Assembly: GCF_000143415.4 (NCBI RefSeq)
Contig: NW_003314324.1
Span: 943,379-1,007,378 of the forward strand
Length of the DNA: 64,000 bases
Source of the DNA: Selaginella moellendorffii
Taxonomy: Eukaryota > Plantae > Lycopodiophyta
Direction: 5' to 3'
Positions 36,363 through 58,178 of this stretch are shown here, piece by piece. A model generated the notes under the pieces. That model was not told where the DNA came from and did not search any database. It saw only the letters and a program-made list of their open reading frames with translations. The translations under genes and the position numbers were made by a program. Each line of letters begins with the position of its first letter. The first letter of the stretch is position 1.

Positions 36363-37247
36363 TTAATGAGACTTTGAAAAAGAATAATTAGTTCGTATTG
36401 TACAAAATTTGGTGTGCCAACACCTGAATAAAGAAGCCATAAGATGGATTTTATTCAGGAAAAAAACACTGGCATCCTTCACCCGTTCAACGCCCCTCAC
36501 TCTCGCACCGTTGGTAAACTTCCGCTTGCAGACGGAACATCTCAGGCGCTGTTGGTCATGCTCCTTGTTGTTAAAGTAATCAAATCTAGTCTCCTGGCCG
36601 CAAAATATACACGGAACTAGCTTTTCAGTGCCTTGCTTAAACGCCATTGATCTCTTTCTCTTCAGGCTTTTCTCCAAACCGGGCTTGCCCAGCCCAAGCG
36701 GCACCCTACAGTCACTCAAAATCTGAGCTTCACGAGGCCTTGGATTAAAAAATCTTGAGCTTTCAAGTGGCACAAAATCATGTAAAACTGCACTGGAAGA
36801 TGAAGATATGTGCATAAAATCATGTAAAACTGGCTGTGAAGTTGAAGATGTTATGTTCTTCCTGTGCATGCTTGAAACCTCCAAATCAGGCAGTGCCCTT
36901 AGTTGGCTGTTCATGTTTGATATAAGAGCAAAACGATCCTCTTCATCCATTGTAGTAGCACCACCACCACTAGAACTTCCTTCTGTTTCATCTGATGACA
37001 ATAACGACGACTCCGGCGAGCCCCCAGATCCAGCAATGGCCTCCGGTTTAGCATCAAATCCCCCAGCTTCATCTATACCTAGCGCTTCATCGCGAGTTAC
37101 GTTTCCTGTGATTATAGTTTTCACAATTATTGAATCCGTCTCCCTCCCCCTCAAAGATGTAATATGTTTGTGACAACTTTCGAGCGATGGGTGCCAGGTT
37201 TCCGTGAGAAGAATCACACCTCTGGCACCCCGATCATCTGGCCGCAT
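36363..37247 (-). CDS. Atypical Dof-like C2C2 zinc-finger protein A (ends uncertain)
   Basis: 294-aa ORF with CIFCGQETRFDYFNNKEHDQQRLRCSVCKRKFTNGARVR, preceded by a basic KRKR. Confidence 0.6.
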   Translation of the reverse strand: MRPDDRGARGVILLTETWHPSLESCHKHITSLRGRETDSIIVKTIITGNVTRDEALGIDEAGGFDAKPEAIAGSGGSPESSLLSSDETEGSSSGGGATTMDEEDRFALISNMNSQLRALPDLEVSSMHRKNITSSTSQPVLHDFMHISSSSSAVLHDFVPLESSRFFNPRPREAQILSDCRVPLGLGKPGLEKSLKRKRSMAFKQGTEKLVPCIFCGQETRFDYFNNKEHDQQRLRCSVCKRKFTNGARVRGVERVKDASVFFLNKIHLMASLFRCWHTKFCTIRTNYSFSKSH

Positions 37248-39059: not shown

Positions 39060-40004
39060 ATGGCTCTGTTCCCGTCGCCAAATCCCAAGAACAAGCCGTC
39101 CTGGAAGCTCCTCCCGATTCTCATCCTCGTCGTCTTCTCCCTCGCCTTCTTACTCTTCCGCGACGCTAGCAATCCCTCGCAATCCCTCGCATCTTCTTCT
39201 TCTTCTTCTTCCTCCTCCTCTCCCTCCTCGCAGATCGTCCTCGTCCCCGTGAAGAACACAATCTCGGTCCCAATGACGGTGGAGCACCTCCCGCACGATC
39301 TCATGACCGCGCTCGTCCACTACGCCTCCACCGACACTACGCCACAGCAGACCCGCGAGGAGATCCTCATGACCGCCAAGGTCCTCGCCAGCCGCGGCCC
39401 CTGCAACTTCCTCGTCTTCGGGCTTGGCCACGATAGCCTCCTCTGGAAGATGCTCAACTACGCCGGAAGAACGGCGTTCCTGGAGGAGTCCGAGGATTGG
39501 ATCCGGCAGATCAGCGAGAAACATCCGGAGCTAGAGACCCATATCGTGGAATACAGCACAGTTCTCACCGAGGCCGATCAGCTGCTAGAACACGCTCGAT
39601 CCAATCGAAAGGGGAAGTGTACTGCCGTCCAGAATTTGCTACTCTCCGAGTGTAAGCTCGCGCTCAATGGGCTGGCGGACGAGCTCTTCCAGGTGGAGTG
39701 GGATGTGATCATGGTGGACGCGCCGCGCGGGTATTTCCCCGGCGCGCCCGGGAGGATGGCGGCGATCTTCAGCGCGGCCGTGATGGCGCGGAGCCGCAAG
39801 ACTGGGAATGGGACGGATGTGTTCGTGCACGATGTGGAGCGCCCCGTGGAGCGCAGCTACTCGGAGGAGTTTTTGTGCCGGGAGAATTTGGTGGAGGAAT
39901 CGGTGACGAGCCATCTGTGGCATTTTAGGGTTCTTCCCAGCCCCGTGGGCAGGCACGAGTTTTGCGTCGCATCGTCTTCCTCGGGGGGATCTCCCGCCAA
40001 TTGA
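39060..40004 (+). CDS. Glucuronoxylan 4-O-methyltransferase-like (DUF579, GXM/IRX15 family)
   Basis: Type II TM helix, PCNFLVFGLGHDSL.W, WDVIMVDAP.GY...APGRM.AIF and DVFVHDV; intronless. Confidence 0.92.
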   Translation: MALFPSPNPKNKPSWKLLPILILVVFSLAFLLFRDASNPSQSLASSSSSSSSSSPSSQIVLVPVKNTISVPMTVEHLPHDLMTALVHYASTDTTPQQTREEILMTAKVLASRGPCNFLVFGLGHDSLLWKMLNYAGRTAFLEESEDWIRQISEKHPELETHIVEYSTVLTEADQLLEHARSNRKGKCTAVQNLLLSECKLALNGLADELFQVEWDVIMVDAPRGYFPGAPGRMAAIFSAAVMARSRKTGNGTDVFVHDVERPVERSYSEEFLCRENLVEESVTSHLWHFRVLPSPVGRHEFCVASSSSGGSPAN

Positions 40005-44430: not shown

Positions 44431-45271
44431 ATGGCAGCAGCATGTCCTTGCGCTTCCGTCTCCCGGCCTGGAATGCTCTCGAGCATGGGTTTTCTCAGAA
44501 ATCAATGCTATCAGCTCCAGAAGAGAGTGGCATTTCCCGCAAGAAGCTGGACACGCAGATTGGCTACTGTCGCATATATGGAGAATTCGAGCAGCAACCC
44601 AGTCGCCAAGCTCGTTAGTTCACTCCCTATCGTGGGTCTGTTCATGAGGATACTCAGTGACGAAGGTGGAATAGGAGGTGATAGAGTGGATTTTCCGGAC
44701 TTTTACACAAGGGTGCAGAAGAGATGTCCGGAGGACGCGTCAGGAGCGTTCGCTCGTTTTGTAGAGCGCCACGGCAAGGTAGATTTCTACTTCGCAACTA
44801 AGAACTCATTTTTTTCCCTTTCTTCTTCCAGGTAGCGAAGCCAATGTTCGTGCTTGTTTGGTGCTGGGTAGCGGCAGTCGGCGCTGGTCTCCTTAAAAGT
44901 GAGGACATTGCAATGGCGGCTTCTCGTCTCAGAGTTTCTTACGACGTCCAGTACGAGGTCGACTGCTTTGGCCTTCTTATGGACGAAGCTCTACAGGTTC
45001 GGGAGCATCTCTGTCTTCACAGTTTCGTAATCTTACGCAGCTTGTTTTCGTTTAGAAACGAAGAAAGTCTAATTCACCAGTTCCGGACGTGCCAATGATC
45101 ACACGGATCGATAAAGCTCTAGACGGGATTTGTGCGTGCTCCATCGGGACAAAAAAAATCTCCAAGGAGGACGCTGAGCTGCTCTCCAAGATGATGTCGG
45201 CAGTCTTTCCGGGAGTCCCAGCACGCGAGATTGATGAGCTCGTCGAAGCTCGAGTCTCCAGTGCAAGCTGA
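44431..45271 (+). CDS. PSA3: Photosystem I assembly factor PSA3-like (3 exons)
   Basis: Transit peptide, then AYME, LPIVGL..RILSDEGG.GGD..DF, CW.AAVGAGLLKSE and RLR.S.D. Confidence 0.8.
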
Positions 45272-45790: not shown

Positions 45791-46348
45791 TCACGACTTT
45801 GGATCCATGGCGTGGAGCTTGGCCAGCCTCTTGCGCTCCTCCCCGCGCAGCTTGGCGCCGGGAGTGAACTTCCTCTTGCACCTCAAGCAGCGCCGCCGCG
45901 GTTGATCGTGCCGGTGGTTGTTAAAGTAGTCGAATCGCGTCGCGGATCCACAAAAGATGCATGCCACCGCTGCCGGATCATCCCTGCGCCTCAAATCGCT
46001 GGCCGGAGGAGGAGGAGGAGGAAGAGGAGGGCGAGACAAATCCTCCGCGCTCGCTGGAGAAGTCACTGCGCTGCTCGATCCCAGAGGCGCTCCGGCAAAC
46101 CCCAGCGTGAGCCATGGTTTCTTGCCGCCAAGGTCGGGAGCGCCAGTGTCTCGAGACGAGGACGACGATGACGACCTCTCGCAGCTCGCGCTCGCGCTCG
46201 CGCTCGTCGATGGGCTCCTGCAGAGCGCGAGGCCCAGATCGAGCTCCTCCCCCGGACGATCCTTGTGATCTTGGGCGATCAAAGTCGCGATTTGGAGCTC
46301 TAGCTTGCGGAGGAGAGTGGTGTCCTGGTGGCGGCGATGATCATCCAT
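45791..46348 (-). CDS. Atypical Dof-like C2C2 zinc-finger protein B with EAR-like motif
   Basis: ATG at 46348 and TATA CTATATAAA (minus) near 46410. Contains LDLGLAL and C-terminal CIFCGSATRFDYFNNHRHDQPRRRCLRCKRKFTPGAKLR. Confidence 0.72.
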   Translation of the reverse strand: MDDHRRHQDTTLLRKLELQIATLIAQDHKDRPGEELDLGLALCRSPSTSASASASCERSSSSSSSRDTGAPDLGGKKPWLTLGFAGAPLGSSSAVTSPASAEDLSRPPLPPPPPPASDLRRRDDPAAVACIFCGSATRFDYFNNHRHDQPRRRCLRCKRKFTPGAKLRGEERKRLAKLHAMDPKS

Positions 46349-46402
46349 GGAAGAGAAGAAGAGAGGAAAAGGAAGAGAAAAAAGCAATGCATTACTTTAG
46401 CT

Positions 46403-46586
46403 TTAGGGTTTATATAGAGCCACCGACAATAAAAGGGAACTGACGTGTCTAGAAAGATTTATATGAGAGCTAATTTTTACTATGGAATTAAAGTCGTTAT
46501 GTGACTAGGATTTAGGGTTAATGTAACTCTTAAAGTAAAGTAGTTTAGGGTTAGGGTTTATAGCCTTTTAAAGCCCTGGTTTAGGG
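46403..46586. promoter_or_regulatory. Telo-box cluster in the ~250-bp divergent promoter of Dof-like B and TRM4
   Basis: TTTAGGGTT at 46403 and 46511, TTTAGGGTTAGGGTTT at 46544-46559, TTTAGGG at 46580. Confidence 0.65.
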
Positions 46587-46597
46587 CTTTAGCGGGA

Positions 46598-49797
<3,200 letters not shown>

Positions 49798-53230: not shown

Positions 53231-55779
53231 CACTCCGCCGGCACGAAATTTCTGGAAATTTCCGCTCACACCTGCGAAATCTCTCACAGATGCACGCGCC
53301 AGGCGCCAGAATATCACTGCACACGCCCGGATCGACAGCAAAACGATCGATAACGGGCAATGCTGGAAGAATCAGGGCAAAGAAAGATCGATCTAAAGCT
53401 ATAGTATCAAGAACCCTAAAAACACGACGATCGTGGAATGGTGTATAGAAGTAGCAGCAGTGGCTAGCTAACAGCTTCAGCCGACAACAATTTCCTTTCC
53501 ATCTATCTTTCGTTCTTTTTTTACTGTGCGTGCTGGTTAGCCGTTAGAGGACAATGCTGCGGTAACTTTCTCTTTTCCCTCTCCAGTGACGGGTAGTTAG
53601 CCGTTGCGAGGGCGTGCGATACGACAATGAAGAAAATGTTTTGACCGGCAGATCCATCCGGGGTTAAACTTTATTTGGCGATTGACTTTGGGTAAAATAG
53701 ACAAGTCTGGAGAACTTATGGTGACCACGACGAAAGAAGGAAACTGTTGCATTTGCTAGCCATGTGAGGGGTTCCAGGTATCGCATGTGCCGGGCGCCAA
53801 TAAAATAGAATATCTCAGTGATGACTGGTGAATCTAAGTGCGGATATTCTTTATTTTGTAAACAGTATAATATTTTGCTTTAATTGGTTAATTTAATATT
53901 ATGCAAATAATTAAAAATCAAAGTTGTGAATATACAATTAACCCAAAAACGTTAGCTTATATATAGAAGCGAGTGGTCCAGATTGCAACCAATCAAATAA
54001 CTATTAAAATCCTATAACAGTATATAGCATTACTCACCATCCTCTTCTTTAAGAAGGATAAAAAGTAATTAAAATTCTTTGATTGATGGGATTTAAAGGA
54101 ACATTAAGAGGAAGTATTGATAGTGCTATTTATTTTTTATCCCTTTGTATGAAGTGTTTTAGTTATTGTATATATACAATTTTTGGAGGATTGTTATGTT
54201 AAATGTTTTGTTGAACCTTATAAACTTCTGGTACAACTTGCTACAACACTTAATAAAGTCCCTTTCATTAAGCAAAGAACCTTTTTTATAAATTGATTAG
54301 GAAAATAAACTAACACTAGATTATCTATTTTATACTTTACATGTGGATGATAATAAGAGTTGTAATGTCATTGTTGTTCCACTTGTATGCAACTAAAATG
54401 TTACCTCCCGTTAAACACCATCCTAATTCACTCTCTCTCTCTACTTACTTGGCAGTGATGTGGCATCATGCCTTCTTTTTATTTTTTCTCTAGCGCACTC
54501 CTCCCATCTATCACTACTATGCATTCTTGCCCGTGGCTCCTGCCCACCCACTCGCCTTCATGGCTCCTACTTGCACTCCCACCCCACATGTCTGCCCGTG
54601 CCCAGCATGTGCCCTAATTATTTCCACGTGGCCACAGCCCTAATACTTAGCCAAATTTCAATCAACACGCCCTCTTCCAATTGCCCCATAATTGACCTAA
54701 AAAACCTTCTTCCATGTGGTTAGTTGCCCTATCATTGATCTAAAAATATTTCTATTTCTTCTATGATCAAGCATGGTGGCAGCACATCAATTTTTAGAGG
54801 TAAGCAATCAATTCAACTTCATATTGATTCAAGAAAATCATTTAGGATCCCCCATAACTTGATAAGATGCAAGAATTCCATGAAAAGGATTATTGTTGTG
54901 TAGATGATTTAGATTGGAATTTGTCTAAATCATATGAAACTATAGCTCCTATTGTATATATATTACACAAGGATGTGAATAAGTTTCTACATGGTGAGAG
55001 GAGAAGGGGTGATGGAATGGATTTTCGGCGATTTTCAAACAAAAATTGTGATCTTGGAGATTTGAAACGACCCAAAAACACAAGATTTTTATTATTCATT
55101 AGGCATACTTTTTTAATAAAATATAATTACTAACTTTTTGATATAGATATCGGTGTGAATATCAAAAATAAGATGCTCGTGAAACATCCTCTATAGTTGC
55201 TAAATCTATACCAAAGTCAAAACATAGAAGTAAACCAAATCAAAGTTCTAGTAAGTGTGTAATTTTTTGGTCAAACAATTTTACAAATGGCCTAATTATG
55301 TGTTTAATTGTAGTAATTGCAGGTGATGCTAAGTCAAACTTTTGACCTTATCCTTGATATAGATTGATTGCAACACAATCATGTCTAACCTTATCCTTGG
55401 TATAGATTGGTTGCAATGCAATCATGCCAAATGTAACTTTGAAGCTTTTCCCCCTTATTTCATACTTCTTTATATTTTCCCCGGATAGAAAAAAGAGTAG
55501 CATAGTTTCACAGACAGGGTCACATGTGACTTTGTATTATTATAGAGAGCATTGTGATAAGAATGGAATTCTTTGTCATGGTCAACTTAACCTGATTGGA
55601 GCAAAGTCATTATTTCCTTAAAAGCTTTCAGCAGATATTCGATATTAGATGATTTATATGATCCACCAAGATTTCACATCAAATCAAATTTATAATGAGC
55701 ATTATAGATTGTGAGAAGGAACAAGTCAGCTAGTGAACCTCCTTGTCGAGATGATTTTCTAACTATGTAGAATATTAAC

Positions 55780-57000
55780 AATCTACATAGAAAGTATTTG
55801 CTTTCAACTTATCAATTATATGAGAATGATGTCCAAAGTGTACATATTTAGAAAAACACAAATCCTGATAAAGTATTTTTTTATCATGAAAGTGATCAAG
55901 GTAAAGATTGTTATAGTATTGAGATTCAAACAACTTGGCAACTGCAAAAGATGATAGACTTTGCAAATAATACTTTGTTCAGTTTTGATGCAACTTTTAG
56001 AACTAATTGCTACAAAGTAAAATTTTATTTATTTTTAAGTGAATAATATTTCATAATTTATAATTCCCATTATATATCATGCTTATTTTTCATTATCATG
56101 GAAATAATATTCCAATTGCATGGGTTTTAACTTTTAATGAGAAAGGAGAACATATGAAGGATTGGATAATAGCTTCAAAAAAATAATATTTATTAGAAAT
56201 TTCAGATTGGAAACCATATATGATAGTGATTAATGATGCTGAAGTAGATATTAATGCTATAAAGTAATTAATTTGATATAATATAATATAATTTTTTTCT
56301 TTTATATAGAGCTATATTTTATTGTCAAATTCTATTATGTATTTGGCATGTAAGGAGGAATTGGCTCAAACTTGTTTTTTGTAATGTGAAATCTTGGGAT
56401 AGTATGATGAAAATATGGAAACTTCTCAAAGATATTATGTATTATTTAATTTATGCAACTTTTCATGATGATAATATTATGCGAGCTGAGATTAAACAAC
56501 TTATCAAACATTTTGAGGTGGATTTTCAAAATGAAGTAGCCTTTATCAAGTATTTTTAAAATGAATGGAAGGACAAAGTTAGTAAGTGAATCAATATTTT
56601 GATTTTTATAATTTATTTTGATTCATATTTGATAAATATGTGGGTTGTTGCTAAAAATTTCTCTCATACTAACAAAGCAACAAATAGTTTGATTGAGGCA
56701 TTCCATGCAAATATAAAAGTTATACTCTCATTCGAAAAAAAATATGCTTGCAATCAAAAGACAAATTGGGTAGGTATTAGTTTACTAGGTATTGCAAAGA
56801 TCATGGTTTTATTCGAAACCATGCATACGAAAAACTAATTGATGGTGCAATTGTTAAAACAAAAATTATTAACGACTCTCCAGTAAAATTTGATAAAGAC
56901 AATACTCACAAATTTTGTGTATAATCCTCTTCAGATTCAACTATATAGTATCTTGTTGTTAGAGATGAAAGACACAGTGATTGAACTTTTTCTTCTCTGT
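55780..57000 (+). pseudogene. Degenerate Mutator-like (MULE) DDE transposase
   Basis: In very AT-rich DNA: FDATFRTN (first D, 55987), IVINDAEVDINAI (second-D region), ILLCIWHVRRNW (CxxH, 56338) and TNSLIEAFHANIK (E, 56695). Stops and frameshifts throughout; no TIRs identified. Confidence 0.7.
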
Positions 57001-57607
57001 AGGCAAGCAAAGGAAAGTTTTGCAAGTCTCAAGCAAAAGTTATTATGTTAAAATAAGGAGAGAAAATCAATTACACTACAATTAGTTATGAGGTTCAATC
57101 ATCACAATTGTATTCAATTTTAGAACTTAGGTCAAATGACTTATTTTATCATCATCAAGATTTTAAAGCACAATTATTACATAAGTAATTCACTTATTAA
57201 TTAAAATTTTGAAATACTTATAAAAATTTGAGCAAGCAATTATCTATCAAAATGTTTATTATGAGCAAGAAATTCAATTGGAGACTATATTAGAGGTAAA
57301 CTAGCATATTTGATATACTAAAATATATGAATATTGAACAGGAAGATATCCATCAAAATCTATAGTATCAACAAGAAACTCAACTAAGGACTACTATAGA
57401 GGTAATTTACACTAAACAAATTTTAGATATTGATATAAAATTTAAGCAGGAAGATATCACTCCATCAAAAGTTATAAAAACGATATTATAGCAAACGATG
57501 ATAGATATCTTACAAAATCTTCTTGATGAAGAAACTTTTTTATCTATGATTAACAATGATTTAGAAATGATACAAGAGAAGATTGCAACCTTTATAGCTA
57601 AACTTCA

Positions 57608-57765
57608 TGTTATAAGGTCCTAGATTTAGACTTCCTAGGAAGTCACCCAACCCAATACTATTTAAACCTTCTCAATTTGGACTTTCCAGGCAAACCCAAG
57701 GACACTTAACCCCAAGTATCCCAAAACCCTTAACCGATTGGAAAAGGGGTTGCACTCTTATTCAT
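57608..57765. repeat. Left part of an older LTR-like repeat interrupted by copy 2 (continues from 63650)
   Basis: Abrupt GC increase starting at TGTTATAAGG. A ~45-bp unit (CCCTTAACC.ATTGGAAAAGGGG.TGCACT.TTATTCAT) lies on both sides of copy 2 (57727-57765 and 63658-63697). Confidence 0.5.
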
Positions 57766-58178
57766 TGTCAGGAATCCCCCAATTCTTGCCACATTCCTGA
57801 CTCTCACCGGATTCCTGACCTGCAGACTACATTCCTTACTCTCGAAACACTTCCCTATTCCTGACTCTCGAAACACTTCCCTATTCCTGACTCTCGAAAC
57901 ACTTCCCTATTCCTGACTTTCTGATTTCCTGTATGATTCCTGAGTCTTGAGCCACATTCCTGATGATGATGTGGCGCCTCCTCGACCTCAGCTATATTTA
58001 GGCCGTCTTCAATCCAAGAGTGGTGGAGCTTCATCAACCTATAGTATATATAGGTTAGCCTTGTTTCATTTCTCCACAATCTGAATCAACGCTAGTTTAA
58101 GGCTTTTTCTTTGTTTCCACTAGCTTTTCTCTTTGTCTTTTGTATTTTCCAATCTTGATCTTGTTAGGGGTCTTGACA
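57766..58178 (+). repeat. 5' LTR of copy 2
   Basis: TGTCAGGAATCCCC...GGGGTCTTGACA; TATATATA at 58045-58052. Confidence 0.95.

Follow-up and report, generated by a model that had tools for sequence, protein, structure and literature searches.

A candidate gene for a strongly diverged Dof-type protein with an EAR-type motif in Selaginella moellendorffii

The locus and its gene candidates

The window analysed here is a stretch of 64 kb of Selaginella moellendorffii DNA and corresponds to scaffold GL377628.1 (GCA_000143415.2); all of the 20,945 nt that were compared are identical. At 45791-46348 on the minus strand it holds an intact, intronless open reading frame that runs from ATG to TGA, with 185 codons and the stop codon at 45791-45793. 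We refer to it as gene B, and in the coordinates of GL377628.1 it lies at approximately 989169-989726. A six-frame scan of the 64-kb window for Dof-like C-X2-C...C-X2-C fingers detects exactly two, one in B and the other at 36528-36611 on the same strand, 9.4 kb away, in a paralogue that we call A. The probable coding sequence of A (36363..36950, minus strand) begins at the Met of MDEEDRF and has an intact allele on the other haplotype (L003:7359-7946). It encodes the same type of finger together with a degenerate EAR-type motif, PDLEVSS. The long open reading frame of A continues for 99 codons upstream of this probable start.

Among the genes called on GL377628.1 there is no model at B and none at A. 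An exhaustive phmmer search of the 1.84 billion cluster representatives of a 15-billion-protein collection returned no self-match for B, so its product is absent from that collection, and the product of A is missing from it too. With neither a called gene model nor a self-match, B is therefore an unannotated gene candidate. Look-ups of the exact products of B and of its allele gave no record, but the control genes, a glucuronoxylan methyltransferase (GXM) and the annotated paralogue P0001 described below, were equally without transcript-like contigs, so these blanks are uninformative about the expression of B. The two loci add two missing gene models to a reference lycophyte genome, and they illustrate how divergent members can escape the published Dof gene counts for Selaginella.

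The neighbourhood of B is gene-dense and includes an amino-acid transporter, an F-box protein, an aldo-keto reductase, GXM, a DEAH helicase, NSUN2 and a GH9 endoglucanase. The predicted protein of the single-exon neighbour at 39060-40004 agrees at every residue with a recorded product of GL377628.1, and its cluster representative is the characterised GXM of S. moellendorffii. An annotated neighbour of 224 aa at 44485-45271 on the plus strand (L002:15426-16212) has no Pfam family on record. The NSUN2-type methyltransferase gene starts at 46598 on the plus strand and is divergent from B, and the interval of about 250 bp common to the two genes looks like a shared bidirectional promoter as far as its sequence can tell. 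Reading consensus motifs upstream of the ATG of B, we infer a putative core promoter (46402..46416, minus strand) with TATATAAA at -68 and the telobox AAACCCTAA at -63, followed by a CT-rich leader. Telomere-like (TTTAGGG) and telobox repeats are found between the two genes at 46393-46414 and 46541-46562. Further along the window, 54000-58000 is very AT-rich, with 25-35% GC against about 47% for the window, and contains tandem repeats of 26 nt (55345-55426) and 43 nt (57831-57918); this region may be a degraded repeat or transposon.

The order of the genes is unchanged on a second assembled haplotype, GL377603.1 (locus L003), where the alleles of A and B are both intact; that of B is found at L003:16691-17251. 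The haplotypes are 96.4% identical over 1.3 kb. In the coding sequence of B they differ by a single synonymous change in the finger, a single Ser/Pro replacement, 3 nt inserted in a Pro run and a rearrangement, also in frame, of a 12-nt tandem repeat. This repeat (46178..46206, minus strand), which was identified with Tandem Repeats Finder and by haplotype comparison, lies in a Ser/Ala-rich linker whose length varies in frame between the haplotypes. All of the changes in the coding sequence are in frame, whereas the flanks of B carry indels of 1, 10 and 14 nt.

The finger and short motifs of B

From the N to the C terminus, the product of B consists of a helix, a DLxLxL motif, a disordered Ser/Pro-rich linker with a WLxLG motif, a basic patch, a C4 zinc ribbon and a second helix, all encoded on the minus strand. 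An AlphaFold2 model, which was built on an alignment of 27 sequences, places the finger at a pLDDT above 90 and has disorder at approximately residues 30-125. The model also predicts an N-terminal amphipathic helix at residues 3-29 (46262..46342), with block pLDDT values of 77-92, although the alignment is shallow there and we regard this helix as tentative. The zinc ribbon covers residues 128-168 (45845..45967) and is assigned as a divergent Dof-type domain from its matches to Pfam PF02701 and, in sequence and structure, to 8xuf_C. Its Cys ligands are C130, C133, C154 and C157, with the spacing C-X2-C-X20-C-X2-C, and the stretch from the first to the last Cys comprises 28 aa (45878-45961). 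In the model it is followed by a conserved C-terminal helix, ERKRLAKLHAM, at residues 170-180 (45809..45841), and R172, L175, H179 and M181 are invariant across A, B and a third paralogue, C, as well as their alleles.

Several lines of evidence connect the finger to the Dof family. The Pfam model Zn_ribbon_Dof (PF02701) scores B at 42.1 bits against a gathering cut-off of 26.6, and it also scores the paralogues above the cut-off (A 39.1, C 45.5). By sequence, the only solved structure with a meaningful E-value against B is the Dof chain of CDF1, 8xuf_C (E = 8e-6). The same chain, the CDF1 Dof domain in a palindromic-bound complex with a DNA duplex, is the top Foldseek match in the PDB for the model of B, with probability 1.0, a target-normalised TM of 0.69 and an rmsd of 1.9 A over 44 columns; the E-value is only 0.027, which is modest because the finger domain is so small. 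The ESM Atlas gives only weak leads for B (Dof 0.85, GATA 0.82). Canonical and divergent fingers in the 27-sequence alignment have thirteen invariant positions in common, which are the four Cys ligands, F139, Y141, N143, N144, Q149, R151, T162, G164 and R168. The initial annotation had proposed a possibly new C2C2 class. We rejected this proposal because the finger scores above the Pfam Dof cut-off, its predicted fold is best matched by the CDF1 Dof domain and the closest relative of B is named as a Dof protein in RefSeq. OsDes1, a rice protein described as an 'atypical Dof', is unrelated and lacks the finger altogether.

The comparison with canonical Dof proteins (PF02701, for example Arabidopsis CDF1, 8xuf) shows a plant C4 zinc ribbon in both, and the predicted fold of B superposes on the CDF1 Dof domain. 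B retains the T-[KR]-F, Y-[YF]-N-N, Q-P-R, T-x-G and R positions. But it also departs from the canonical domain of about 52 aa at many places. The canonical spacing is C-X2-C-X21-C-X2-C, whereas A, B and C all have X20, so that the loop between the Cys pairs is 20 residues long instead of 21. Instead of the canonical signature FCYYNN, RYWT and LRNVPVGGG, B has FDYFNN, RKFT and the tail LRGEERKR, and CIFC and GA are found in place of CPRC and GG. The NVPVGGG.RK extension is absent and the conserved helix is found there instead. Furthermore, the finger is C-terminal in B and near the N terminus in the canonical Dofs among the matches, and the gene of B, which encodes just 185 aa, is very small and lacks introns. 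By sequence and predicted structure, the finger of B is thus best described as a strongly diverged Dof-domain homologue, yet not as a canonical Dof.

This leaves the picture of the Dof family unchanged, in that B stays of Dof type and its paralogue already carries this label. The finger can rather be seen as a natural experiment on the Dof fold, in which near-invariant residues have been replaced while strong purifying selection is retained. The residues at issue for the recognition of AAAG are the Trp of YWT, the inner Cys, the 21-residue loop and the NVPVGGG tail. In the literature we found neither a list of the Dof residues that contact DNA nor a paper on PDB entry 8XUF.

Besides the finger, the initial annotation had pointed out two short motifs, LDLGLAL and WLTLG, both of which are present in B. 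LDLGLAL (LxLxLxL; residues 36-42, 46223..46243) is of the EAR type and was read directly from the sequence. WLTLG (residues 79-83, 46100..46114) is a second conserved linear motif, which matches WLRLG of paralogue C and of its allele (P0001, P0096) and falls within the part that phmmer aligned, residues 74-182. It resembles what we take to be the LxLGLPG core of Aux/IAA domain I. An LxLxL alone is found in 17% of shuffled B sequences, DLxLxL in a fraction of 0.015 of them and in 0.001 of the shuffles of C. The longer motif is seen again at residue 32 of C, also in the C allele, and at residue 18 of a relative with two fingers, P0002 (DLSLSL). LxLxL anywhere in the protein is found in just 2 of the other 38 matches, plus P0002. 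In A, which has only the degenerate PDLEVSS at this position where B and C retain DLxLxL, a proper EAR motif is missing, and the motif is therefore no constant of the subfamily formed by A, B and C. Its retention by B and C, even though their divergence is saturated, is nevertheless reasonable if not conclusive evidence that the motif has a function. With EAR repressors that recruit TOPLESS, such as Aux/IAA domain I, NINJA and SUPERMAN-type proteins, B shares the LxLxL core, the preceding Asp and the predicted disorder around the motif. This likeness ends at the short motif and there is no homology beyond it; TOPLESS binding by B is a prediction.

Paralogues, divergence and selection

Apart from A, the closest relative of B is P0001 (XP_024543368.1), which is named 'dof zinc finger protein DOF1.3-like' in RefSeq and was found with E = 2.7e-19 by phmmer among the 1.84 billion representatives. 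It is the sole close relative that the search detected. This protein, paralogue C, has 172 aa and is encoded by an intronless gene on a different S. moellendorffii scaffold with unrelated neighbours; unlike B it is annotated. Its allele P0096 (198 aa) is intact and has the same synteny on GL377612.1, and with it A, B and C are all intact on both assembled haplotypes. Word-index protein searches with the whole of B and with its finger region returned nothing at all and so missed P0001 despite four shared words of 5 residues, whereas a P0001 query returned P0001. Blanks from this search are therefore no proof of absence for short diverged queries.

B and C share the finger CIFCG...RFDY[FY]NN...K[KR]KFTPGA and belong to the same subfamily. 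They are both intronless and of similar size (172/198 aa for the two alleles of C). Each has a DLxLxL motif, located near residue 32-36, together with WLxLG and a tail of the form K[KR]LA[KE]LH.M; in P0001 these read DLSLTL, WLRLG and KKLAELHRM. The short motifs follow in the same order, which is DLxLxL, WLxLG, basic patch and tail helix. The identity between B and P0001 is 43% overall and 58% over the finger and tail, and C has a GC content of 41.5% against 63% in B.

The similarity of B to A is restricted to the finger and tail, where BLASTP aligns 36/60 identities (E = 2e-22). The unusual finger substitutions said to be common to A and B, namely CIFCG, TRFDYFNN, HDQ and CKRKFT.GA..RG, were all recovered in our comparison, and the contrast in GC content is just as clear, with 63% in B (GC3 71%) and 43% in A (GC3 44%). 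The bodies of the two proteins had been called unrelated. This stands for B against A, where the similarity is no better than in shuffles (p = 0.95) and we rejected homology of the bodies, but it does not hold for the body of B in general, because its motifs and C-terminal helix recur in paralogue C. The bodies of A and C are not significantly similar either (shuffle p = 0.33). For B and C the similarity is marginal (shuffle p = 0.013), with a top-scoring alignment that does not bring the motifs into register. We also observed that the tail of A shares a C-K-F-x-T...Y..K pattern with C that has been lost from B.

For the finger we compared a block of 44 codons in all three paralogue pairs. The synonymous differences are saturated (pS 0.82-1.0) and the nonsynonymous differences are far lower (pN 0.21-0.29), from which it follows that A, B and C are old duplicates whose finger is under strong purifying selection. 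The suggestion of an old duplication with selection on the finger, made in the initial annotation for A and B, thus extends to all three pairs. Taken together, the sequences make B look like a member of a strongly diverged Dof subfamily with three loci.

Possible function and origin

Our preferred reading, to which we give somewhat better than even chances, is that B is a functional, unannotated gene of S. moellendorffii which encodes a diverged Dof-type DNA-binding repressor that recruits TOPLESS. The basic zinc ribbon would bind DNA, perhaps with a preference that has moved away from the canonical AAAG core, the EAR motif would recruit co-repressors of the TOPLESS family, and B would act as a small nuclear protein that represses its target genes. 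That B is expressed, is located in the nucleus, binds DNA and TOPLESS and acts as a repressor is in each case inferred. A Dof protein that recruits TOPLESS would not be a new arrangement, as CDF1-5 are reported to repress CONSTANS via TPL/TPR recruitment (PMC10203454, citing Goralogia et al. 2017), and the co-repressor (TPL) recruiting function is hence one that the CDFs carry too. In moss, PpDof1 and PpDof2 function as repressors (PMC3350930), and TPL is described as older than land plants (PMC10953049). A Dof finger together with an EAR motif in a lycophyte therefore bears on the question of how early Dof repressors became coupled to TOPLESS.

The main rival reading concerns the binding of DNA. 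Since B departs from canonical Dofs in the Trp of YWT, in the inner Cys, in the length of the loop and in the C-terminal extension, its specificity may differ from AAAG or may be lost, and so DNA binding may be altered or lost. B could then be an adaptor or decoy without DNA binding, in which the finger serves as a protein-interaction module and the EAR motif still recruits TOPLESS; the partners might be other Dofs or chromatin proteins, similar to microproteins or NINJA-type adaptors. Such a role would suit the changes in YWT, FCYYNN, loop length and NVPVGGG, the new conserved helix after the finger, and the small size of a protein that has only short linear motifs in predicted disorder beyond the finger. 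The strong purifying selection on the finger is compatible with DNA binding and with an adaptor role alike. But the ribbon is still very basic and keeps all nine of the invariant residues other than the Cys ligands, from F139 to R168, and its predicted fold superposes at 1.9 A on CDF1 in its DNA-bound form. We consider the adaptor or decoy role unlikely.

It is also conceivable that the open reading frame is an unexpressed relic, either a pseudogene or a chance frame in GC-rich DNA. B is unannotated and has no transcript record, and long open reading frames arise easily at 63% GC, as is illustrated by the frames of 103-119 aa on the opposite strand. However, the pN of the finger is far below the saturated pS against both paralogues, the frame is kept on both haplotypes with frame-breaking indels in the flanks only, the motifs are conserved with the annotated paralogue C, and a TATA box and CT-rich leader are found upstream. 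We judge a relic to be quite improbable. Selection, intact alleles, paralogue C and the promoter motifs make B look like a real functional gene. Another scenario would be that B is the cargo of a transposon, for example captured by a Pack-MULE or a Helitron, and here one could point to the moss relatives of which some are labelled 'transposase-like' in IMG. These relatives score above the Pfam cut-off only for the Dof family, though, and there are neither terminal inverted nor long direct repeats around B. Only three loci are known, and B is located between the conserved single-copy genes for the DEAH helicase and NSUN2, in the same order on both haplotypes. High copy number inside transposons bounded by terminal inverted repeats, the outcome that according to the initial annotation would have argued against its interpretation, is not what we found: flanking inverted repeats are absent, the copy number is low and the gene order is stable. 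Without flanking repeats and with stable synteny, transposon capture was rejected, and we regard it as very improbable.

The wider relatives of B allow some speculation about the origin of the repressor that we propose. After P0001, the best phmmer matches (E 2e-10 to 1e-5) resemble Dofs without being canonical members: Phe replaces the canonical Trp, and most of the proteins contain two or three fingers. The sources of these F-type proteins are two mosses, Ceratodon and Physcomitrium, the lycophyte Diphasiastrum, and contigs from Logan, ENA and IMG; the set comprises P0002-P0008, P0013, P0015, P0020, P0023, P0027, P0030, P0034 and P0035. They reach the curated Pfam cut-off for Dof only, with the exception of a PaaD zinc-ribbon match in P0003, and in the literature we searched we found no description of them. 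Some of the F-type proteins belong to 90% clusters of 15-22 members and bear the IMG label 'transposase-like'. With representatives such as Ceratodon KAG0576476.1, Physcomitrium A9RXP8 and Diphasiastrum KAJ7555101.1, B shares the Phe for Trp (xFT or xFQ), the non-Cys residue in F-x-Y-[FY]-N-N and the non-Tyr residue after NN. P0002 moreover starts with DLSLSL, and its second finger groups with Diphasiastrum. In contrast to B, the F-type proteins keep a spacing of 21-22 residues, are longer with mostly 2-3 fingers, and have neither the WLxLG motif nor the tail helix.

Maximum-likelihood analysis of the fingers unites A, B and C in a clade (97/91) and places it with the F-type fingers, on one side of a branch whose support is 98/92; the alignment behind the trees has 48 columns, long branches meet in them, and the taxa were picked by their similarity to B. 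The AU test did not reject a grouping of A, B and C with SELMODRAFT_29567 (p = 0.185), a Selaginella finger that keeps the Trp and shares TRFDYYNN, so the grouping with the F-type fingers is not secure. Searches of protein collections, to which unannotated genes and poorly sampled Selaginella genomes are invisible, found no orthologue of B outside S. moellendorffii. It is possible, although we are doubtful, that A, B and C are what is left in Selaginella of an ancient, so far undescribed second class of Dof fingers ('F-type') which pre-dates the split between mosses and lycophytes. If this were true, mosses and Lycopodiaceae would have kept multi-finger proteins of the class, and Selaginella repressors with one finger and an EAR motif; the DNA specificity of the class could differ from AAAG. 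The subfamily may instead be an offshoot confined to Selaginella. Among the matches there is also a protein of 1565 aa from Vaccinium darrowii (KAH7837929.1; P0012 / P0067), in which several degenerate Dof-like fingers are found N-terminal to a Cys-rich, PHD-like stretch, an unusual fusion for a Dof-like finger.
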